NCBI RefSeq assembly: GCF_964204645.1
Contig: NC_134029.1
Location: 1,426,001-1,490,000 of the forward strand
Length of the DNA: 64,000 nucleotides
Direction: 5' to 3'
From: Tubulanus polymorphus
Taxonomy: Eukaryota > Animalia > Nemertea
The notes under the pieces were generated by a model, which saw only the letters and a program-made list of their open reading frames with translations, searched no databases and was not told the origin of the DNA. A program made the translations under genes and the position numbers. This document shows, piece after piece, positions 7,182 through 48,200 of the stretch (position 1 is its first letter; the number at the start of each line of letters is the position of its first letter).

Positions 7182-10145
7182 AAATGATTATATATAAACA
7201 AGAAAACAAAACGATCTGAGTGGGTGATTAGAAAGTTGTAAGGAGATTATACAAGTTGTAGTAATTTGAAACAAAAACAAGAAACTGTAGTTATCACAAT
7301 CATTGTAGGATTCTCTACTCTTCCATGTTGCACGAGAATGATGTATTATATACCGGTATATCTGAGGCGAAGGAGCGCGCTATTGTTGGATGTTTAGCTT
7401 GTTTTCTTTGTCGGTGACGAGATTTTACTGAAAGGTTAATAGTGTCGACAGCGGTAACCGAGGCGGACTGACAACTAGTGGTTATTGACGCCGGTTTCTG
7501 CTGTTACAGTTCAGTCCACGGCATCGACGGTTCGTCAATATTAATATGGCGAACCACGATACGATGGGCTGGTTGGATGAAGGGACGAGCGCTATATCAA
7601 CGATGACGTCTTGGCTGAGGTTTGATACCAGTCTAAGACCAACAGTTCTAACTGTTTCGTCTCTAACAACTTAAGATCAGTTCAAGGATTTACCACTACT
7701 TATGGACTTGAGTAACGAGGGGGCAACTGGGCCCAAGGGTCGGTTTGGCAATACTGGCGTTGATTCAAGGCGATACGGTCATCTTGATTCTATAGCTAAT
7801 CTTACCGGTGTTAGGTGACGACCGTGCAACAGAGAAACATCATATCGTGGGGCTTGAGGTTACCCCCGATAAATACTCAGTGATTAACTCAGATATAACA
7901 TTCGATTTTAAACATGGAACTAATAATACAAATGACAAGATACGAGTTTCATTGAGAGATACGGTGTTACTGCCTCATTAGATAAAGGAACTAGTTCAAT
8001 AAGATCTAATTGAATATCTGAGACTTGGTTAAGTTTATTTATTACACAATATCAGACACAGTTTTCTATTTATTACACGGTTATAGGTGTTTGCGTTCAC
8101 GGAGTTCTCGCGCTAAATTACAAACATGCGCAGATGTTTATACGAGAATGCTGTATTAATAAACGCATACCTAACATAAATTAACCAACAAGGGGTTCAT
8201 GATCTTACATAAGATACCCCCTCTATCCTTCTCTCTCACTATCTTCCTCTCTCCCTCTCTCCCTCTCTCTTTCACTACAGATATATACTTCATCAAGGTC
8301 ATTTACTCTATACAGCCTAATACACAGAACACTACTAATTACAGCTGTTCCAGATTTATAATAATTATTCCAGGCTCAGCTCAGCTGTTTTGAACTCTTT
8401 CCAATTTAGTCGTAATATGCACGAAAATTATTTTGAGATCTGATTCGATAATCGAATTTCAGACAAACTCTGGCAAAATGACTTAAGTTTAACAAGATAT
8501 TTCTATTTCTCTCGCTAGTGATGGAAGCATGGAGGAATTGTAAGACGCAGCTCTGACGTCGATCATGCCTTCAACCCACAACATTCTCAATTTGCATATA
8601 TTCACCATAGCTTAATCGGCCTACTACTTAAAAAGTTGTCTTTTAAGAAAACATGGCAATTCCGAGAACTTCCTTCTGGTAATGTCTTATCTATCAATAT
8701 ATCAAATTGTAAATTTGCCAACCTGTCGGGCGATATTGACAGGACCTCCCAAGCCTTAATGCTGAACCAATTATTGGGGGATGTCCAGGAGCAGAATATA
8801 TATCACGTCAAAATAAACAAAGCAATGTTAACAATTAAATGTTAATTCAATTTGAACTTAAATAAATATCAACTAATTAAGGTAAAGTTTCCAAGTAGTT
8901 ACGTTGGATCATTATCATATCGGTCCTTCGTGTCGACTTACTATCGACGAAAGGCTCAAACATTTTTTACTGCAGACCCGCGGTGAGATTCCGGGAGTAT
9001 TCAATGTCAGAATTACCGACGTTAAAAAAGGATGTTTGACTGAGTATTAGAGTGTTTGTCCGTTAGCGAGACGATTAAACCAAGTACAGGAAAAACCTAC
9101 GAAAGCAAATAATATTAACCATGAAAGGATTCTGTCCACTTGACAGGGAAAAGAGACCCTCGTTGCTATGGCGATGTCGTCAAGTGGTCGAGATAGATGA
9201 AACAATCGACATCAGGCGAAACGACGATGGAAGGAACCAAGGAGACGAATCTGGGGATAACACCAGGCGAAGAAATGACACCCAATACCAGACACAACAG
9301 CGAATAAATTACGTTCATTTTATGTGTAACCACTGTCCAGATATTCTTTTCTTGCATATTCGATATTTCTTCAAATTCCGTTTCAAAGCAATCATGAAAC
9401 TTTTATCAAAATTCAAAATTCGTAATTTCACTAAATGTTTCGTGTCGCCTGAGTGATCGATTTCCATTTTATTAACATTGATGAAACGTTCACGCTGTGT
9501 TTAATGTTGTTATGATGATAAAAAAGAACCGCGCTAAGAATAAAAAGAGTCAGAAGAAATGTTTCCTTGAGTTATCAGTACATACGATGCTCGACTGTGT
9601 CCTAAAATCATCTTCAGGAATACTGTATTTCAGGCATATTCTTCAGTAGGATTTCTACACTATCCAAGATTCGTAAGATTGTTAAGAAATTAATTTTTTT
9701 CCCGTATACTGAGTGACCTTTAAAACCGACATTTCCGAGCCAAATACGAAAGAAAAGAATTTTGTAATCAAGTGAAATCCCACGAAATCTAAAATATCAA
9801 AATTGAAATGTTAGAGGCCATTGTTTCCTAACATACATCGTCAGGTGAACTGATATCAGACGGTATTTTTTCATACTTATTAAACTCTACGGCATCTTAA
9901 TTTCACTCGCATCTTATTTTCGGGTACGGGTAATTTGAATCTAATTCCTTTCGACGGCTAAATTTAGAAGAGATGATTCTGGCAGGGACTGAGTGGGATT
10001 AATTCGACAACGATGATGACTAATTGTATGAGATAGGATTAATTGAAGTGGCGACTGATTAGAAATACTGTCTCAGTCTATCACAGAGCACAATCAAATC
10101 ACTAGAATATATATGTGTATACATAGACATACGGGGGGGGGTAAC

Positions 10146-10932
10146 TCTCTCTCCTCCCTCTCTCCTTCTTGCTCCCTCTCTCCTTGCTCCCTCTCTCTCC
10201 TCGCTCCCTCTCCCTCTCTTCCCTCTCTCTCTCCTTCTTGCTCCCTCTCTCTCCTCGCTCCATCTCTCTCTATCTCTCCCCACCCCTCTCTCTATCTCCT
10301 CGCTCCCTCCCTCTCCCCCCTCCCTCTCTCCTTCTTGCTCCCTCTCTCCTTGCTCCCTCTCTCTCTCCTCGCTCCCTCTCCCTCTCTTCCCTCCCTCTCT
10401 CCTTGCTCCCTCTCTCTCCTCGCTCCCTCTCCCTCTCCTCCCTCCCTCTCTCCTTCTTGCTCCCTCTCTCTCCTCGCCCCCTCTCCCTCTCTTCCCTCCC
10501 TCTCTCCTTCTTGCTCACTCTCTCTCTCCTCGCTCCCTCTCTCTCTCCTCCCTCCCTCTCTCCTTCTTGCTCCCTCTCTCTCCTCGCTCCATCTCTCTCT
10601 ATCTCTCCCCACCCCTCTCTCTATCTCCTCGCTCCCTCCCTCTCCCCCCTCCCTCTCTCCTTCTTGCTCCCTCTCTCCTTGCTCCCTCTCTCTCTCCTCG
10701 CTCCCTCTCCCTCTCTTCCCTCCCTCTCTCCTTGCTCCCTCTCTCTCCTCGCTCCCTCTCTCTCTCCTCCCTCCCTCTCTCCTTCTTGCTCCCTCTCTCT
10801 CCTCGCCCCCTCTCCCTCTCTTCCCTCCCTCTCTCCTTCTTGCTCACTCTCTCTCTCCTCGCTCCATCTCTCTCTATCTCTCCCCACCCCTCTCTCTATA
10901 TCTCCTCGATGCCTCTCTCCTCCTCTCTTCTT
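10146..10932. repeat. Compound polypyrimidine (CT-rich) array with higher-order duplication
   Basis: Almost exclusively C/T on the plus strand. The landmark catctctctctatctctccccacccc recurs at 10261, 10590 and 10865. Confidence 0.95.
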
Positions 10933-21914: not shown

Positions 21915-22575
21915 TGGGTTTGGCTCCACTTGCTCAGGAAAGCAAGAAAAGGTTCATTCTTGCTTTGGCAAAAGAGGAAGCGGCTCCTTATAGACCTTGC
22001 AAGCGAAGAGTGGCTCCTTCTGTCCTGGCAAGCCTGGAAAGTGGCTCCTTCTGTCCTGGCAAGCGAGGAAAGTGGCTCCTTCTGTCCTGGCAAGCGAGGA
22101 AAGTGGCTCCTTCTGTCCTGGCAAGCGAGGAAAGTGGCTCCTTCTGTCCTGGCAAGCAAGGAAAGTGACTCCTTCTGTCCTGGCAAGCCTGGAAAGTGGC
22201 TCCTTCTGTCCTGGCAAGCGAGGAAAGTGGCTCCTTCTGTCCTGGCAAGCAAGGAAAGTGGCTCCTTCTGTCCTGGCAAGCCTGGAAAGTGGCTCCTTCT
22301 GTCCTGGCAAGCGAGGAAAGTGGCTCCTTCTGTCCTGGCAAGCAAGGAAAGTGGCTCCTTCTGTCCTGGCAAGCCTGGAAAGTGGCTCCTTCTGTCCTGG
22401 CAAGCCTGGAAAGTGGCTCCTTCTGTCCTGGCAAGCCTGGAAAGTGGCTCCTTCTGTCCTGGCAAGCAAGGAAAGTGGCTCCTTCTGTCCTGGCAAGCCT
22501 GGAAAGTGGCTCCGTTTTGCCTTGCTAGCGAGGAGTCCGACTTCGTTTTGCCCTGGCAAGCGAGATAAGTAGCTC
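21915..22575. repeat. 31-bp minisatellite (16 clean units at ~22009-22504, degenerate units at both edges)
   Basis: Unit agtggctccttctgtcctggcaagc(ct/ga/aa)ggaa. Confidence 0.97.
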
Positions 22576-39010: not shown

Positions 39011-40212
39011 GGAGTGCAAGGTCCGATTAAACACTTTACAGAGGTAAGACGCAACCAAACTAGAGGTAATACACACCCCACCCAAACAAGAGGTAATACA
39101 GTTGCAACCGATCGCGTGCAAGCAGCCGCAAAATTGACCTACGCCCGCCTAGTTATATATATATTTATCTAATATTCTTGAGACAATATCAAAGGTCAAT
39201 TTAGCTCCGTTTTCCTATCATTTCAAATAATCTAAATCATTCTCTCTCGCACGAATATAAACATTTTATACAACAATAAACTTTTCTCACATTTCACACG
39301 AAGATGTTCATTAATCGATTTGATTTCGTGTCGTTTGATTCCGCTACTCATCAACGTGATAATCACATTAACATTTACACGCAGGATTTTGCTGGATAAT
39401 ATTTTAATACGCGCCACGTAGAAATAAATAAATAATACACAGATAATAATAATATACAAGATGAAATAATGAAATGCATCGAAAGCTTGGATCACAGGTC
39501 GGCAATTTGCTTAAATTATATCTAATCAAATAAAACTATAAATCACGAATAGTAAAAATAAGGGAGACCATAAAAATCGACCGGAATATAGTACGTATAT
39601 ATGTGTTAAATAGCACTAGTTTGATAGCTTCATTAAAGGAGATTTTCATTCGCTTCTTAAAAAGCACGATTGAAATAGATATCGATTAAATATTGGATGA
39701 GTGATACTTGTATAACAATGAACTACCTCGGACATCATACAGCGTATTGGGTACTATCCGTACAGAATGTCTTACAGCCGTCTATTTCGATAAGGATGTT
39801 ACATGTACTAACCTAAAACAGGGCCAGCGAAAAACAACATATTATTCTCCACTAAGATAAACTACATTAATACATTTTACAGAAAGCAGCTTGATTAAAT
39901 AAAGTACATAAATCGCCTAATAAGGCTTCGCATGGAAAGACTATCAGGGTCCGACAACTAACTTGCATTCAGTAAGTCATTTTTCACGTAATGTATTTAT
40001 ATGGAGAGTGTATTAACGAGATGTCTTTAAATTATAAGAGTTTTAATTCAACGTGTTCCTGGGATAGTTGTGTCTTGTCATGCATTCTTACTTTTAGTAG
40101 GTCTAAAAGTGCCATGGAAATCGTGACGCCCAATCCATGCTGACAGGACCAACTCATAATCATGACTCTGAACTTAACGGCAATATGATTACATTCGAAT
40201 ATCGATGGCGCC

Positions 40213-42656
40213 TTATTTCTTGTTTTCAGAACAACAAAAGCAATTACAAACGTATTCTACGAAATAAGCGAAAGAACCCCAAATACCGGGCGGGAATACA
40301 GGCGTCAACGACCTTGAATTTTCACCTTCATGCATGAGACTGGTATTAGAAGTGACACTATCAGTCAGAGAGGAACATTCACTCGTTTTTCGTTGGCGTT
40401 TTTTCTTCGTTTTCAAAGGAGTCATTTCGATATCGCTATCGGCTACGAAACCTTCATTTCTCAACACGAAATCGGCGTCAGACACGCACGTTTTCATATC
40501 TTCGCAAAAGAGGGCGCTGTCGGAGTTTATTTCGAGTTCGTTACTTCCGGCGGTGGCTAGTTCGTCGTGCGGGGACATTTCCCGCATCAGGATTCCATCC
40601 TCAGCGCTGATCGTGTATTCATCATCCACGTCATCATCGGCGTAACCTTGATCCGACGGTTCGCGGTCGATTTCAGGACACATCAACAACGGCACCGAAA
40701 CGTCCGGTTCCCGCCCGTCTGCGCCGCTCCGGTCAGATGCATGCTCCTTCTTCGCGGCTCCTTTTATCTCCGTCTCTGGAAGATTTACCCCGCATTCAAC
40801 ACAGGACGCGACATCGGGTAGAACTGTTTTTGACTCGTTTTCACTCGTCGTGTTTGTTAGATTGTCGTCGATATCGTCGTGAACGCTCGATAGAGCCTTC
40901 TGTAGAATTACATCGACGAAACTCTTGGCGAACTGGATCTGACCAGGAATATCAGCGCTGGGAACTATAGGTTCAGTGTCTGAGCTACGCTCTGTCTCGC
41001 AGCGAATCAACTCGGCTTCTTCTAATTGGAATGTCGTAGTTCTATCAGGAATATCATTTACAGTGGAATCGACGCAAGCACTAATATTACTACTACAAAC
41101 CCGCTCCTCACTAGAAATATCATCGCCTTCCTCCTCTACTCGCTCAAGCGAGGATACATCATGCGCGAGGGGAAGTTTGTGTTTAGCGAGAATTATTTCT
41201 ATTTCGTCGTTGCTACAAGGTTCAATTACTGAACTCTTTGATTCGGCGGTTTCTACCGGTGTTTCATAGTTGTCTGCGCGATATTCTTCCGTAACGTCAA
41301 CTTCCAACAGAGCAGCGATATCACCACTACGACTTTCATCAGTAGCGACAGTTTCACGTCCGTCGTTCTCGACTGTCTCTGGCGCCGTGATGACAGAATT
41401 ACGAATTTCTCGCTTTTCTTGCTTATCAGTTTCGGAATTGATTTCGTCGTGATTCAACGCCGCCGTTGTATCGGCGGTGAAATGTTTGAGATTTAGTGAT
41501 ACGATATCGGGCAGGTTTTCGACGAGGGGTCCATTAGTCTCTCGTTGAATAATACCGTGAAATGAGAATTCGGTAAATTTAGTCGCGCGCAGTCGCTCGA
41601 TACAATAGCGATCACAGTCGTCGCATGGCTGCCATCGGGGTCCCGAGTAAGCTCCGTTCATTTCCCTATTTGTCGATAAATTCTCACCTAAATCCCACGA
41701 AACATGATTAGTAATCGTATCTTTAATTCGTCCCTTCGTATCTACAGAGCTTTCTCGCGTTACATCATTACTGTCTCTGCAGTAGGAGGAAAGCTGTTCT
41801 AGGGAATCTCTCAAATGAGTGAACAACTTCGGAACTACGTCAACAGTCGGTGAGATGTCACTGCTAACGTCTGAGGAAGCTTTCGAATCGTCGCTCGTTT
41901 GAGATTCGACCGTCGGGCTAGGCGTCAATAGCAGACGGTTTTGTCTTTCATCCGAATTATTCAGAACGTTCTCGTCGTGAACACGTTCGTTATTCGTATC
42001 GCGAATACATATCTCGACGATCGACGGCTGAGTTGAGACGGGCTCGCCGAATATATCTATCACAGTCGTTTGAGGAAGATCGAAATCGCTTCCTAACTGG
42101 AACTGGTCGTGAGTCGTTTCTAACATCGAGTCCTCTACTGTATTTCCGTCTCGGAGACACCCGTTACTCATCGCAGTATCGGTACTGTCCGCTTCCAGTA
42201 GATCCGGGTCGGAGGTTTGTCGCTCCATTTTGTGTGGTACTTCAATCAGCGATAGAGGAACGTCTTTATGATGTGGTTCTGTGACTGGTATCAGATACTG
42301 CGTGAAATCGTTTGGATCAACGACTCCATCTGAATGCTGATTCGGCGGACTCGATTCTGAATTATTATCACCATCTGCACCGTTGTGTTGTTTATTGGTT
42401 TCTTCTTCAGTTTGATTGGAATTGTTTGAATTAAAACGTCTGCCACACGGCTCACCGTTATGAAACGGTAGATTTCCTTCCATAACGACGTGTTGATGAT
42501 TTCCCTGATGCTCGACCGGTTCCGACTCGTCGTCGTCGCTGAGTAGAAATACTTCATCGTCGCTCTCAATAGTTAGATCCAACCCTTCAGATAGTTCACT
42601 ACTCGACTTCAACTGAAAGCTACCGAGCAGAAAGTACGGAAGCTGCTGACTCGAGC
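40213..42656 (-). CDS. Coding exon 4 (terminal, 2444 nt): long D/E/S/T-rich region with an AKAP-like helix, a basic patch (KTKKKRQRK) and a Cys-rich hydrophobic C-terminus
   Basis: The only long non-repetitive ORF in the window (799 aa in the track, whose 'M' is a TTG). The frame stays open upstream to acceptor ttcattttttgtag|GC at 42656, and phase 1 matches the exon 3 donor. Stop codon TAA at 40213-40215. Confidence 0.92.
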
Positions 42657-42899
42657 CTACAAAAAATGAATGAGTTTTTTCATGAAATTTCTGAGAAAGT
42701 GTATTGACCTTCCTGGTACCGGGGATTCGATGGTATGCAAATAAATTACAGCTTAATGACAGAATTCGTATTTGGCATGTCTTTTACAAACCCACTTGTG
42801 ACACCAGCCGGTAGTGAAACAAGGGGTACGATATCGACAAATTTACATAATTGTTATTCAAATGTTAAATACCATTCCTGCGGAACAAGTATTGATTAC

Positions 42900-43071
42900 C
42901 TTTGTGAACTGGTAATGAATCTAATGCCCACATGATGCTGGGTAGATTCCATTTAGCCAGGTGAAGATGGTGCTGATCGTGAACGTAAGTATTTCTCCTC
43001 GGACATTCACCTCGAGTTATTTTACCGTTTCTCTTGTTCATGACGACCCAGCGCCAGTCGTAAACCGAATG
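42900..43071 (-). CDS. Coding exon 3, C-terminal half of the CBM20-like domain (HSVYDWRWVVMNKRNGKITRGECPRRNTYVHDQHHLHLAKWNLPSIMWALDSLPVHK)
   Basis: Acceptor ggtttatgtttgcag|CAT and donor AAAG|gtaatc; 172 nt (phase 0 in, phase 1 out). Continues the CBM20 pattern (Y/F)K(Y/F)VV…(W)E…R…W. Confidence 0.88.
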
Positions 43072-43352
43072 CTGCAAACATAACCATAATATCTCAACAT
43101 ATTCTACCAACCATCGAGTACAACTTAACTTTACACCAGTAAAGAAGGTTACCGTCAATATAGGTGTCTACATAATGCTTTAAAAATGGTCAAAATTGTA
43201 TAACATCTTAATATCCCCCAACATCTTAACAACATTCACACATTGATAGAATGGTTAAAAATAGATACAAGTGACAGAAACATATAAAGGTCCCTACAGT
43301 GTTCTATGGCTTAAATCATAACTTTTACTATAGATTTTCTCGATCATTTTAC

Positions 43353-43630
43353 CTTCGGTAAACAGCAAACAGCGAACCACCAACCATCACCGGGAGGAAG
43401 CTCAACTGCCCGCAAAGCATTCGATCTATCCCTCGAGCCGAGCGGTGGGGCTGAGCCGATAACTGCTGGATTCTCACCAGCCAGGGCCACATGTTGAGTT
43501 AGGAAGACTACGAGTATTTGACCCAGTTCTGACGCCTTCTGTAGAGCGAATTCGGTAACACCAATCTGAGACAAGGCCCAGCCTAGTTTTTCGCGTTCTT
43601 TGTCCCATTTTCGGATCTCGTTGGATGGCT
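43353..43630 (-). CDS. Coding exon 2, N-terminal half of the CBM20-like domain (…ILVVFLTQHVALAGENPAVIGSAPPLGSRDRSNALRAVELPPGDGWWFAVCCLPK)
   Basis: Acceptor cgtttttgtcttccacag|AG and donor CCGAAG|gtaaaa; 278 nt (phase 1 in, phase 0 out). Matches the CBM20 pattern V-x-F…GE-x-x-x-V-x-GS-x-x-x-LG-x-(W)-D-x-x-x-A-L…W…LP. Confidence 0.88.
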
Positions 43631-43730
43631 CTGTGGAAGACAAAAACGAAAGTGATGATAACTCCATATTTTTATAGCCTTTTGTTCAAGAATGGCTCGG
43701 GTCTTCCGGGATATCTTAATCAATGGACCC

Positions 43731-43797
43731 GGGGACCGTTTCACGAGAACGCCTATCGTAGCGAATGAAACTAAAGATCTCTCTATGAAACGGCCCC
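43731..43797. mobile_element. Small MITE with TIR ggg(g/a)ccgtttca (PIF/Harbinger-like ends) in intron 1 of the gene
   Basis: ggggaccgtttcacgaga…tctctatgaaacggcccc. Relatives lie at 60317-60400 and 13540-13612. Confidence 0.65.
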
Positions 43798-45077
43798 GCT
43801 GATTTTTAAGGGACAGCGTTGACTAGATGATGAAATATGGCCGATACTACTGCACTGCTTAGAAAATGAAATTAGCCAAACTGTCGCTCGTCGACTGACA
43901 ATGAACGACAAAGTTATGGAATAATCGCGTATGCGGCCATAAAACCAGGCAGCAAATATACGGAACGGGTCGATCGGATACCGAGGAAGGACAGTACTAT
44001 GATTGATAGCTCTGTTCAAATCATGTCAGCATAAATTAACCTTTTGCCGTATCAATTGATTTCTATGCTTCACGCATGTCGCTCATATTTGAGCTCCTCG
44101 CGGAATGTGTAGGAGGGTATATATGCTTCTCATAAAATAGATTGGTTTTCTACTTCGATCCCGTTTGTACTGCGTCCTTGACCGGATACTCGACGCACAA
44201 AGAGAAGAAAGGATAGGTCTATCAATTTTTGTTGTTAATTTCCGAAATTGTTCTAACGAATTTTACGATACGTTTTTTCAACTGTATTATATTTCTCGAC
44301 GAGTTTCTAGAGGAAATTAGCTTCGACGTGGGAAATAACGTGGTGCGTTTTCTGTTCGTTTCCCGGAGGAATATCAAATTTCGCAGCTTAAAAAAACAGC
44401 GTTTACAACCAGTTAAAACGTTTTAACATTCAATAATTAACTGCTTTAAACTAAAACTTCAATACAATTGCATCGTTTTGTGTCATATCGTTTTTAGTGT
44501 TTCAGAAAACCTACGAATAAGGCGATTTTTCACAAAGATTCCATGAGTCAATTTTACGGTATTTTTCAACTACTGTATTGTCGTTTTCACTCGAAAAATA
44601 ACCATACAATTTCAAGTCTAATTTGATTCACTGAAGTTTCTAGAGATTCACTACAGTGTGCGTATATCTGAAATAAGAGCTATCATACCTACAGACGGTT
44701 GCGCAATCAGTCAAGGGTAGAATCTGAACTAGCTTTCAGCGCGATCGGTTATTCGCTCGTTAGAGTTAAGAATATTTCGGTAACATACGCAACGTGTTTA
44801 TAGCAGAGTTCAGTAGACAACATAGTTCTTTACCTATTATATATACTGAATATACTTATTGAACTCGAAGTGTGCATTTACTCATTTCATTTCATTAGCA
44901 TTCTCGTGCCAAAATAAAGTTTTTCGGAGAAGGAATTTTTATTCAGATTCTATTCATCTCGCTAATGCGCCCTGTTTCTTTACTATAGAATTATTTCATC
45001 TAAAGATCAATAGAAGTTATTTACATCACCGATATCTCAGGTTTTTTATAAGCTATTGTAGTTTATATATAGTTTAC

Positions 45078-45216
45078 CTTTGAATGTGTTCACATCGCTG
45101 GCATTGATCCATCTTTGAAATGGTACAGCTCCGCTGTTTATCGGGTAATATTTCATAGGCGGCGACAAGAGACCATTTTCCCCCTCGTCCTGATTATCGT
45201 CCCCAACTTGGGACAT
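45078..45216 (-). CDS. Coding exon 1 (start codon) of a ~1010-aa CBM20-like/acidic/AKAP-helix protein: MSQVGDDNQDEGENGLLSPPMKYYPINSGAVPFQRWINASDVNTFK
   Basis: The minus strand reads acceptor ...ttctattttcag|TGA ATG TCC..., with an in-frame TGA immediately before the ATG. It is open for 139 nt and ends AAAG|gtaaac (phase 1), matching the phase of the next exon. Confidence 0.75.
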
Positions 45217-48200
45217 TCACTGAAAATAGAAACCGCACAGACAAACATGTGTCATAGTTGAGTTTGATTAGACCAAATAAACCTCTATCAAATCTATATC
45301 ACTCAAATAAAGCAACATATTTCCATGTGACACATATTTGCTTAAATTTAGGAATTAGTAGAATAAATAGACTGCGTTGATACAAAGACAGTTAAAAGAA
45401 TTGTCGTGAGCTCCGTTCCGCTACCTTGAGGAAATTTAGTGGTTCTACGAGTAGATTTGAAATAACTAAGGTGTCTATCACGAGTAAATCCTGCTTTTAG
45501 ATTTGAGATAACTTGACGTGAAGGTGCAGATGAATTTTCCCTTTTTGAGTACGACTGCAAAAATAAAAGGCTACCAAAATATAACTTTCCAAAAGCGATT
45601 ATTGAACTCTGTATACTGGTACCAGAAATCAAGGGATAGAATCCCGAGGTCTGAAGGAATCATTATCACCTCATTCAATATTGAGACATAGTTTGCGTTG
45701 ATCGAGCGAAAAAACCTACGCGTTATTGTACGGTTTGTACGGTTTTTATATCGAGTGACGATCTCCGAAGAGGTCAAGGCCGTAAAATTGATCCGACCGT
45801 AATCAAAAAATCAATCTTCCGCATAAATCATGAGATTTTTCTCGCAGACGATCAGACGTTTATTCAATGCTGTAGTGGCGTTCAGCCAGCTTCCTTCATG
45901 CTGAACATGCAACGATCTTACAGTTCGAACCTCCAAATCTTTGAATATTTCGATTGAATATTATGTGATGCAATTTTGTGATTTGTGTAACTATTTAATG
46001 CGGTAAATAATGTTTATCTATATTGATACTTAGTAAGAGTTCTGTGTGAGTCTGTGCACTACGTCATCGACATTGGCGTTTCAAAATAACGACTACAATG
46101 AATTTTGGCGGTTTTTTGCAATTGAAGTATTTGTATAGCTGTTATTCTATTTTTGATAAATCTTAATAATTACATTTGAGAGGATGTGCATTACATCATC
46201 AATATCGGTGCTAGACTGGTTGCCGGTCAATTCAATTCAATCATCGATATATTCAAATCCAAAATAACTTTATTGATCCTTAATATTATAGATGTGTGAT
46301 ATAGTATTCATTCGCGGTCTAGAGGAGATAAACTCGGTGATGACCGCTGAAGATAACAGTGAAACTGTATGCATGAAATCATGCTGTTCATTTCACTCGA
46401 TACCGTTCATTAGCCGTTCATTAGCGTTGCCTTCACTATCGCTCCCTTGCTGTTAATTGATATGATTTATATATATGTAACTTCTCTGACCGCTCTCTAA
46501 CCACAGTAATAAACACAGTAACTCGAATTTAATTCAATCAACCCCCCTTCAATTTTACATCAGAGTTTACAGTTATATTGATGTTATGTACGGACGTCAT
46601 CTACGTACATATTGTCCACTCGCGTCATATTGGACACATCGAATGACAGTGTGAACCTTTTACTTCAGTAAGTTGCTTAAGTTTTACGTCCAAAATGACG
46701 CGCTATGACATCAGACATATTGTTTCTATAGACCTTGTCCACGTGACGTCACAACGTTTAGTAGTAATATTGGCCGTCAAGCGCAAGCGGCTAAAACTGA
46801 AGTCGAAAATCTGCGTAGACGGCCATTTGACGGCCAATATGACGAAAAATAAAATGTGACGCCTGAAGATGAAATATATAGAAATGCGATATGAAATAAT
46901 AAAGAGTTTTTGGTGATTGCCGATATCTGACCAAAACCACTCCCTGTCAACGATCAATTCTCATACAGTGATTTCACACATTTTTTCCGACGTTGATATC
47001 ATTTATTCCGTTATTGTCAGAATATAATCAATAAGAGCCTCTATTTCGCGTGACCTCGAATGAATAAATCTCGTTTAGTTCGTGTTTATTCAACGCTCCA
47101 GTAGTGCTGATAATAAACCACGTAATGGCGTGTAGAACACGCGCACCTGTTCAATCTGTCCGTACATTGTATCCGAATCTTTAGATTTTTCGGCGAGAAA
47201 TATTGCCATGGTAACATAATTAGAAGGCGCGAAATCGCTTCGAGATACACTTGATATGAGGTAGTTTTTTCCTATCGACTCGTTGAGACTTACACGCTTT
47301 TTTTTCTGACATTGAGTTAAATGTAGTAATGTCGTTTTTACCTTGAAATAGCGAGATTATATGCCTCTTATTCATTTGATTGATTTGACCTGAATTAAGC
47401 CTTATTTTGACATGTTGCTTACATCCGCGGGGAGCGGAACATGGACGGGGTTTGATTTTGAAATCGGAAAGTACAGATTAAGTCGGAAGATCGGTAAAAT
47501 TTACAGAATTTTTGAAGTCATCGTAAATTTTGCAGTAAATTCGTAGATCAACGAAATGATTTCCTCGATTGATGAAATCTGTTTTAACGGTTGATTTATG
47601 AAGTATTTGTGAATATTTACCTGATGATTATCGTTATCCGTTTTCATTCACTAAATGAATAAAGGCACTGGCGAAATTTACAGATTGTCAAGCGGTAGTA
47701 GAATATGCTGCTCTTCTGACATCGTCACTAAACCATCATCTAATTGATCATTGTCTTCTCACTTCTATCTCTGTCTCTCTGTAAGATACAGAAAAAGAAA
47801 TGCGTCTTCATATTTTGCTTGTCTCACAACGACCTTTCTGAAGCCGGGATCGCTTTTACTGTGACGTCACAGCTTTCCGACATGCGTATGAAACTGATTC
47901 ATTGAATGAGATTCGATTTCACCAGAGATTTTCATAATAATTGGCGGAACAAGGTTTTCACTGCGTCTTATTATAGAAAAACAAAGCATCATCAATTCTA
48001 AACCGTGTTATATCTCGACGCGCAATGTTAGAGACATCAGTCGAGATGAAACCTCGTCAGAATACTCTCTATCCTTACAAGCTGATAAAGCGTTATTAAT
48101 AGTGTGTGCTTAGCTCAAGATGGCCCATTCTAGTTATACATACAATGTCCCCAAGATACTGAGCTCTTTCTTGCTATCTGCAATATATTAACGCACATAT

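Follow-up and report, generated by a model that had tools for sequence, protein, structure and literature searches.

LOC141905864 of the nemertean Tubulanus polymorphus encodes a divergent STBD1-type CBM20 protein with a replaced sugar-binding site and a long acidic tail

We describe here LOC141905864, a real and transcribed five-exon gene on the minus strand of a 64,000-nucleotide (nt) stretch of DNA from the nemertean Tubulanus polymorphus (RefSeq assembly GCF_964204645.1, contig NC_134029.1, positions 1,426,001 to 1,490,000 of the forward strand), which we call the window and to which positions refer unless another contig is named. The encoded protein has 1010 residues, beginning with a head that contains a CBM20 domain of the STBD1 kind and continuing into an acidic tail of about 800 residues for which no relative was found. 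All four canonical residues of the first sugar-binding site of the head are replaced, and most of a second, STBD1-specific site is kept. The reading that we favour, with a probability of about 0.55, is that LOC141905864 is a divergent lophotrochozoan member of the family with an N-terminal CBM20 (the STBD1alpha type), and that its product acts as an adaptor in the manner of STBD1, probably tethered to a membrane and with a ligand face that has changed.

The coding sequence consists of four exons at 45216-45078, 43630-43353, 43071-42900 and 42656-40213, whose lengths of 139, 278, 172 and 2444 nt sum to 3033 nt (1010 codons and a stop) and which join in phases 1, 0 and 1. Coding exon 1 starts with the ATG at 45216, immediately 5' of which is an in-frame TGA, and encodes aa 1-46 plus one nucleotide; exon 2 (aa 47-139) contributes a pair of N-terminal helices (aa 61-81) together with the first half of the CBM20 domain, exon 3 (aa 140-196) the second half, and exon 4 the remainder (aa 197-1010 and the stop), with the 3' untranslated region (UTR) continuing below 40213. 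The donors of all three introns read AAG/GTAA, and each of the three acceptors is a pyrimidine tract followed by AG. An earlier note, made from the letters of this DNA, had proposed this four-exon model with its phases and length and with canonical GT-AG junctions at 45078/43630, 43353/43071 and 42900/42656, and the model is borne out by both a database protein and a transcript. When exon 4 by itself was searched against 5.8 billion database proteins, a single one was found, 1010 aa long and 100% identical, which is the NCBI 'uncharacterized protein LOC141905864 [Tubulanus polymorphus]' and reproduces the three exon junctions letter for letter. A 4994-nt contig from the public run X2 aligns to 40000-42655, 42899-43071, 43353-43630 and 45078-45223, omitting exactly the three introns (CT..AC on the plus strand, and hence GT..AG on the strand of the gene), and the introns themselves are covered by the DNA run X1. 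The six-frame list of open reading frames agrees with the remark in the note that such a list shows the gene in pieces only.

A further 240 nt of the X2 contig map uniquely to 47625-47864, with a donor ...tcag/gtaaat at 47621/47620, and there is therefore a fifth, non-coding 5' exon (47621-47864), unseen by the earlier reader, which splicing joins to 45219, immediately 5' of the start codon region; the upstream limit of this exon is simply the end of the transcript contig. At its other end the contig reaches 1506 nt below 40000, which indicates that the 3' UTR is long. We also note that the cyclic AMP (cAMP) response element (CRE) palindrome TGACGTCA occurs six times in the window as against 1.3 copies expected, a number not reached in any shuffle. 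The copies are at 47862-47869, 46744-46751, 6134, 18519, 21001 and 21883; that at 47862-47869 lies exactly at the upstream end of the X2 contig (~47864), and that at 46744-46751 is inside the first intron.

The CBM20-fold domain occupies aa 84-190 (42919-43520) and is split by the intron at 43352-43072. A CBM20-like domain had been suggested from the sequence, and a beta-sandwich is recovered at this position by structure prediction and structure comparison. The AlphaFold (AF2) model of aa 60-205, computed from an alignment that consists of the CBM20 relatives themselves, which is a caveat on the fold, has a predicted local distance difference test score (pLDDT) of 89.6 and a predicted template modelling score (pTM) of 0.84, and in it the two N-terminal helices (aa 61-81) pack against an eight-strand sandwich (aa 84-188). 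The best Foldseek match in the PDB is the CBM20 domain of human STBD1 (8x8k; E 5.5e-8, TM 0.84-0.87), onto which the head superposes with a root-mean-square deviation of 1.8-1.9 A and 25% identity. The PDB matches at E<=0.001 number 60, and the best 50 are CBM20 domains without exception, those that follow STBD1 coming from amylase, glucoamylase, CGTase and GPCPD1. A shape search of the ESM atlas with the head has CBM_20 in all of its best 10 rows, and a language-model search has it in 29 of 30 matches, at 0.97. When 1.84 billion proteins were searched exhaustively with phmmer there were 14 matches, namely the protein's own record and 13 relatives at E-values from 3.9e-29 to 8.4e-4, and all are confined to aa 47-200. 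The closest (E 3.9e-29) is a Lineus longissimus protein of 5420 aa in which CBM20 is repeated about nine times; the others are 129-340 aa long, four of them named, from Haliotis, Argopecten and Lineus, and the rest without a named source (the contig of one relative is a 3.6-kb environmental genomic fragment and added nothing). Nine of the ten phmmer relatives scanned pass the Pfam CBM_20 cut-off, at 36-84 bits. A word-based search with aa 60-205 found nothing beyond the protein itself, and Pfam found no matches when each exon was submitted singly because the domain is divided by an intron. In the whole protein Pfam reports CBM_20 alone at E<=10, in keeping with the earlier statement that there is no recognisable catalytic domain.

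Several comparisons point to STBD1 as the relevant kind of CBM20. It is the best phmmer match of the protein in the PDB, and a profile built from the alignment of relatives reaches human STBD1 at 1.6e-19 as against 7.8e-7 for GPCPD1, with laforin not among the 54 matches listed. On these sequence and model comparisons we place the head in the STBD1 kind of CBM20, at family level and not as a claim of orthology because the domain tree considered below is poorly supported. Invertebrate forms of STBD1 were first described in 2026, when Ren et al. surveyed CBM20 proteins in 74 metazoans and distinguished STBD1alpha, with a single N-terminal CBM20 and restricted to lophotrochozoans, from STBD1delta, which has multiple CBM20 domains and occurs in nemerteans; the CBM20 of chordate STBD1 is at the C-terminus (PMC12913940). 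LOC141905864 has the one domain at aa 84-190 of 1010 and comes from a nemertean, as in STBD1alpha, and the Lineus 5420-aa protein is of the STBD1delta type. The architecture had been called unfamiliar and roughly the reverse of STBD1 in topology. The layout is indeed inverted relative to chordate STBD1, but it is the normal invertebrate arrangement and was already described as STBD1alpha (PMC12913940), and LOC141905864 probably belongs to that family as a variant form and is not a new architecture. Three traits set it apart: the loss of site 1, the orphan acidic tail, and an ending with a basic cluster and the sequence CNCFCC.

The loss of site 1 is best seen against the human protein. Human STBD1 binds maltotetraose through site 1 (W293, K322, W334 and N339) and through an STBD1-specific site 2 (H271, Y272, V273, R333 and W355); the single substitutions N339A, H271A or R333A each largely reduce association with glycogen, and the R333A/N339A double substitution abolishes it (PMC11406230). 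With the register checked against 8x8k, the site-1 residues correspond to R113, R146, G160 and R164 of the Tubulanus head, so that four of four are replaced. The same columns in the relatives contain W in 18 of 20, K in 19 of 20, an aromatic residue (W/F/Y) in 18 of 20 and N in 14 of 20 sequences, and in oyster STBD1 the equivalents W36, K69, W83 and N88 are conserved (PMC12913940). At site 2 (H93, V94, A95, R159 and W180) three of the five residues are kept, with H93, R159 and W180 equivalent to human H271, R333 and W355, and with V94 and A95 in place of Y272 and V273. The head has a net charge of +5 as against -76 for the linker that follows it (aa 201-768). These replacements suggest that the binding face has been remodelled and is basic, and candidate ligands could be a glucan held through site 2 alone, the acidic tail of the protein itself, or an anionic polymer. 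The link to glycogen-mobilising machinery that the earlier note had put forward is weakened, since all of the site-1 sugar-binding residues are replaced.

Other CBM20 genes of the worm show different states of this site. The nearest paralogue, at C1:2820171-2820656 (28% identity over aa 60-183), has the two-helix extension and the CBM20 domain in a single exon with no intron, and of the four site-1 residues it retains the first Trp and the Lys, the second Trp and the Asn being replaced by Q and T; erosion of site 1 is therefore not unique to LOC141905864. Two further CBM20 genes that lie 6.5 kb apart on the same contig (C1:1686217-1686480 and 1692911-1693168) have intact site-1 residues and cluster with the Lineus multi-CBM20 repeats in the domain tree (support 90/84), and the family may thus have expanded locally.

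Behind the head, an acidic Ser/Thr-rich linker extends over aa 201-768 (40942-42645), an acidic linker having been named in the earlier note also, and the composition of the tail is 21% D+E and 19% S+T. Four short elements stand out in the tail. Directly behind the head is the run IESDDEVFLLSDDDES (aa 226-241; 42523-42570), which was picked out by a regular-expression scan and contains EVFLL (aa 231-235); it is the sole stretch in a strongly acidic context that fits the rule for a FIP200-interacting region (FIR), namely an acidic residue, a bulky hydrophobic residue, two residues of any kind, and L/I/V (PMC11406230). A single canonical motif resembling an LC3-interacting region (LIR), FHGI, is at aa 562-565. 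An amphipathic stretch like those of A-kinase anchoring proteins (AKAPs), QIQFAKSFVDVILQKALSSVHD, follows the linker (aa 769-790; 40876-40941) and fits the pattern for binding to type II regulatory subunits (RII) of protein kinase A (PKA). Finally, a basic cluster KKKRQRK (aa 947-953) runs into RKTS (aa 952-955), which matches the PKA consensus R-[RK]-x-[ST] (40378-40410 for the two together), and beyond these the tail ends in GIWGSFAYFVEYVCNCFCCSENKK. The aromatic and hydrophobic end with CNCFCC (aa 983-1010; 40216-40299) has Cys 1000, 1002, 1004 and 1005 within the last 11 residues, the cluster that had been reported from the sequence. We favour the view that this end is a candidate for a multiply S-acylated, aromatic, membrane-associated anchor because the stretch is not convincing as a transmembrane helix. 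A helix is present at aa 986-1007 in a full-length single-sequence AlphaFold model, which has a mean pLDDT of 34 and is unreliable even for the CBM20 domain.

No relative of aa 200-1010 was found in the exhaustive phmmer search or in the worm's own genome, and the tail is matched neither at the 2.82 Mb paralogue on C1 nor elsewhere in that genome. Word-based searches with exon 4 and with aa 740-1010 returned the protein itself or nothing, a language-model atlas search with aa 740-1010 gave no matches, and Pfam found nothing in the segments containing the helix, the tail and the motifs. The roughly 800 residues of acidic tail are probably disordered and lineage-specific. Within the species, at least 12 synonymous and at least 11 non-synonymous coding variants are present among those listed, counts that are indicative only, together with a 6-nt in-frame deletion at 40969-40974 (codons 758-759) in runs X1 and X2. 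These numbers and the in-frame deletion suggest that the coding sequence is under real but relaxed constraint. A cluster of non-synonymous variants is found in both runs at codons 745-763, shortly before the AKAP-like helix begins, and no variant is inside the helix among those listed.

For the ligand, the membrane attachment, and the autophagy or PKA partners of the protein we infer the following arrangement. The head (aa 61-190), as a CBM20 of the STBD1 kind in which site 1 has been rebuilt as an arginine-rich face and most of site 2 (His, Arg and Trp) retained, would bind with altered specificity, either to a glucan or to an anionic ligand. Attachment to a membrane would probably come from the basic cluster and the Cys-rich aromatic tail, through S-acylation, and short motifs in the tail, in the form of the acidic FIR/LIR-like motif behind the head and the RII-type amphipathic helix, would recruit partners.

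A number of observations weigh against this membrane-tethered STBD1-like adaptor. The two checks proposed earlier for the CBM20 domain divided: AlphaFold and Foldseek gave the fold and STBD1 as best match, but the Pfam CBM_20 profile (PF00686) scores 12.4 bits with the whole protein and 16.2 bits with aa 40-210, below its cut-off of 23.3, although this sub-threshold match spans profile positions 3-91 of 97. A six-frame CBM_20 scan of the genome flagged seven other loci and missed that of LOC141905864. In a domain tree of 25 CBM20 sequences, with no vertebrate ones among them, one of the 22 branches is well supported, and the branches are long. A head lacking site 1 may not bind glycogen at all, by analogy with human STBD1, because the site-1 substitution N339A largely cut glycogen association there. 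The FIR and LIR motifs are candidates by match to a regular expression. A classical transmembrane tail anchor was rejected as the default, the C-terminal stretch having a Kyte-Doolittle mean of 1.1 over 19 residues, which is too low, and Glu and Asn inside. The short STBD1alpha-type relatives (129-340 aa, as against 1010 aa here) are without such a tail, and oyster STBD1, which binds glycogen and GABARAPL2, has no hydrophobic anchor (PMC12913940).

Other explanations were considered, the first of which takes up the proposal of the earlier note that the protein anchors PKA. In a true AKAP the helix at aa 769-790 would dock in the groove of the PKA regulatory dimer while the Cys tail sits on a membrane, the CBM20 head would bring the complex to glycogen or another target, and RKTS would be a local PKA substrate. 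The stretch is amphipathic, and AKSFVDVILQKA within it fits the published RII-binding pattern at all hydrophobic positions (matches at aa 773 and 777) and shares 7 of 12 residues with the optimised AKAP-IS peptide. However, the pattern is loose, with at least one match in 51% of shuffles of the LOC141905864 protein, and no AKAP or RII-binding Pfam profile matches the whole protein or aa 755-800. A phmmer search of the PDB with helix peptides gave chance matches to designed repeat proteins only. The genome does encode both RII-type and RI-type PKA docking domains, and first exons of regulatory subunits are found at L008:1480-1731 on contig C3 (RII type, MSFEIPVGLTDLLQDFTV...) and at L009:1438-1644 on contig C4 (RI type). 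When the complex of two worm RII docking domains (L008:1480-1614) with aa 755-800 was predicted in three runs alongside three controls, it scored 0.34 in all three runs as against 0.03 for the best control, with at least 80% of contacts in agreement and a partner pLDDT of at least 57, which is weak support. In a calibration on microbial pairs, 51 of 78 solved complexes attained the pass mark, as did 2 of 108 mismatched pairs, and passes at 0.60 or below account for 5 of the 78 solved complexes and for all four passing mismatches (of 180); weak passes such as 0.34 are more often wrong than right absent a strong prior. Moreover, the controls were unrelated proteins and not other amphipathic helices, and complexes of docking domains with AKAPs are abundant among solved structures, so that a pass may reflect the memory of the model. 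The full-length single-sequence model is not helical at this stretch, a lack that we do not count given its mean pLDDT, and the tail has no orthologue in any searched collection. A full CRE palindrome at the 5' end of the X2 transcript contig would be in keeping with PKA anchoring, as would the Lineus protein (XP_064623499), which has two helices of the form FA..hh..hh..A, FATDVAKRVVNLAQKQ and FAAGIAKNVIKLAQMQ, at aa 5-24 and 115-136; three RII-pattern matches fall within the first 200 residues of that protein, two or more occurring in 3% of shuffles, and an RII-type helix is present in none of the 24 short relatives. A full-text literature search found no description of a CBM20-bearing AKAP. 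The amphipathic stretch that the earlier note had pointed out thus stands, but the frequency of the pattern in shuffles, the weak complex and the lack of an AKAP profile leave PKA anchoring by LOC141905864 a tentative proposal that we regard as doubtful. Because both long members have RII-type helices and the short mollusc relatives have none, it can be extended to the suggestion that nemertean STBD1-family proteins became PKA anchors, with the Tubulanus head re-tuned away from neutral glucan and towards an anionic ligand and the acylated tail on the membrane, and this broader version is rather improbable.

A quite different explanation is that this is a fast-evolving lineage-specific protein in which the head alone is functional, as a pseudo-CBM for a protein or an anionic ligand, and the motifs of the tail arose by chance. 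Relatives are confined to aa 47-200, the composition of the tail is biased, the motif tests are individually non-specific, and four of four site-1 residues are lost, all of which this explanation would accommodate. It also finds support in non-synonymous variants nearly as frequent as synonymous ones, but 12 against 11 represents fewer replacements than neutral given the approximately threefold larger number of non-synonymous sites, the indel polymorphism is in frame, and an open frame of 2.4 kb has been kept and is transcribed. In addition, the basic cluster followed by the Cys/aromatic end looks non-random, and the complex prediction clearly exceeds its controls. We consider this explanation unlikely, if still credible. 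A further candidate was suggested by PPP1R3A (GM), the muscle glycogen-targeting subunit of protein phosphatase 1 (PP1), a target of PKA regulation that has an N-terminal glycogen-binding module (CBM21), a long linker, an RVxF motif and a membrane anchor at the C-terminus. LOC141905864 resembles it in overall layout and in having a PKA-consensus site, but the module is CBM20 and not CBM21, and the one loose match to the PP1-docking motif, KLGW (aa 61-64), is part of a helix in the folded head. With no strict RVxF motif in the protein, we rejected a PPP1R3A-like role, and a functional analogue of this kind is very improbable.

Elsewhere in the window, a CT-rich satellite with 219/329-nt higher-order units is found at 10145-10882, and a 31-nt tandem repeat with 16 copies and 95% matches at 22009-22513. 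The satellite and the tandem repeat account for the long spurious open reading frames in both regions and for the strong GC skew at 10-12 kb, and the large open reading frames near 10.1 kb and 22 kb were rejected as genes, being tandem-repeat artefacts.

To our knowledge, STBD1 is the only cargo receptor for selective glycogen autophagy. LOC141905864 amounts to a natural experiment on this family, in that a CBM20 of the STBD1 type has most of site 2 with the universal site 1 fully replaced, three of the four residues by Arg, and loss of one site with retention of the other bears on the contribution that each makes and on the question of whether CBM20 domains can be re-purposed for other ligands. 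If the helix of the tail binds PKA, it would connect cAMP signalling physically and directly with a scaffold that handles glycogen, a connection that we know of in no animal. Should nemertean members of the family in general be PKA anchors, they would bring PKA straight to a scaffold that carries CBM20, in other words to a glycophagy receptor or to glycogen particles, and would be the first CBM20-bearing AKAPs. If the helix does not bind PKA, the gene would be a lineage-specific and fast-evolving offshoot of an expanded family.

Among known systems, LOC141905864 is close to lophotrochozoan STBD1alpha, such as the STBD1 of Crassostrea gigas, with which it shares a single N-terminal CBM20, probably of the STBD1 clade, and the lack of a catalytic domain; its few sequence relatives include short proteins of this type from molluscs. 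The oyster protein has W/K/W/N where LOC141905864 has R/R/G/R, and the Tubulanus protein alone of the two has a Cys-rich hydrophobic end. Lineus longissimus XP_064623499 is the closest relative in sequence, with 26-36% identity per repeat, and is likewise very long, acidic and provided with AKAP-pattern helices. It differs in that its CBM20 repeats are placed mid-protein, most of them with the first Trp of site 1 kept, and its helices are N-terminal; a Cys tail is lacking, and only its CBM20 aligns with LOC141905864. AKAPs of the AKAP-IS, AKAP79 and AKAP18 type offer a parallel, in that an RII-pattern amphipathic helix and a targeting element occur together on a long disordered scaffold, and AKAP18 and AKAP79 use lipid or basic membrane anchors; LOC141905864 is unlike them in belonging to no AKAP sequence family and in having a binding that is weakly predicted only. 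PPP1R3A is alike in the succession of an N-terminal module of glycogen-binding type, a long linker and a C-terminal anchor, and unlike in its CBM21 and RVxF. Vertebrate STBD1 (genethonin-1), the endoplasmic reticulum-anchored glycophagy receptor represented by 8x8k, is the best match of the head both in structure and in PDB sequence. Relative to it, the order of parts is inverted, with the candidate anchor of LOC141905864 at the C-terminus and no clear transmembrane helix, the linker is far greater in length, EVFLL takes the place of a W-x-x-V LIR as candidate motif, and site 1 is lost, although three of the five site-2 residues are kept. The two proteins would nevertheless share a common logic, in which a CBM20 domain is joined to a disordered region with an acidic motif of the LIR/FIR type and to a membrane anchor, here a candidate one.

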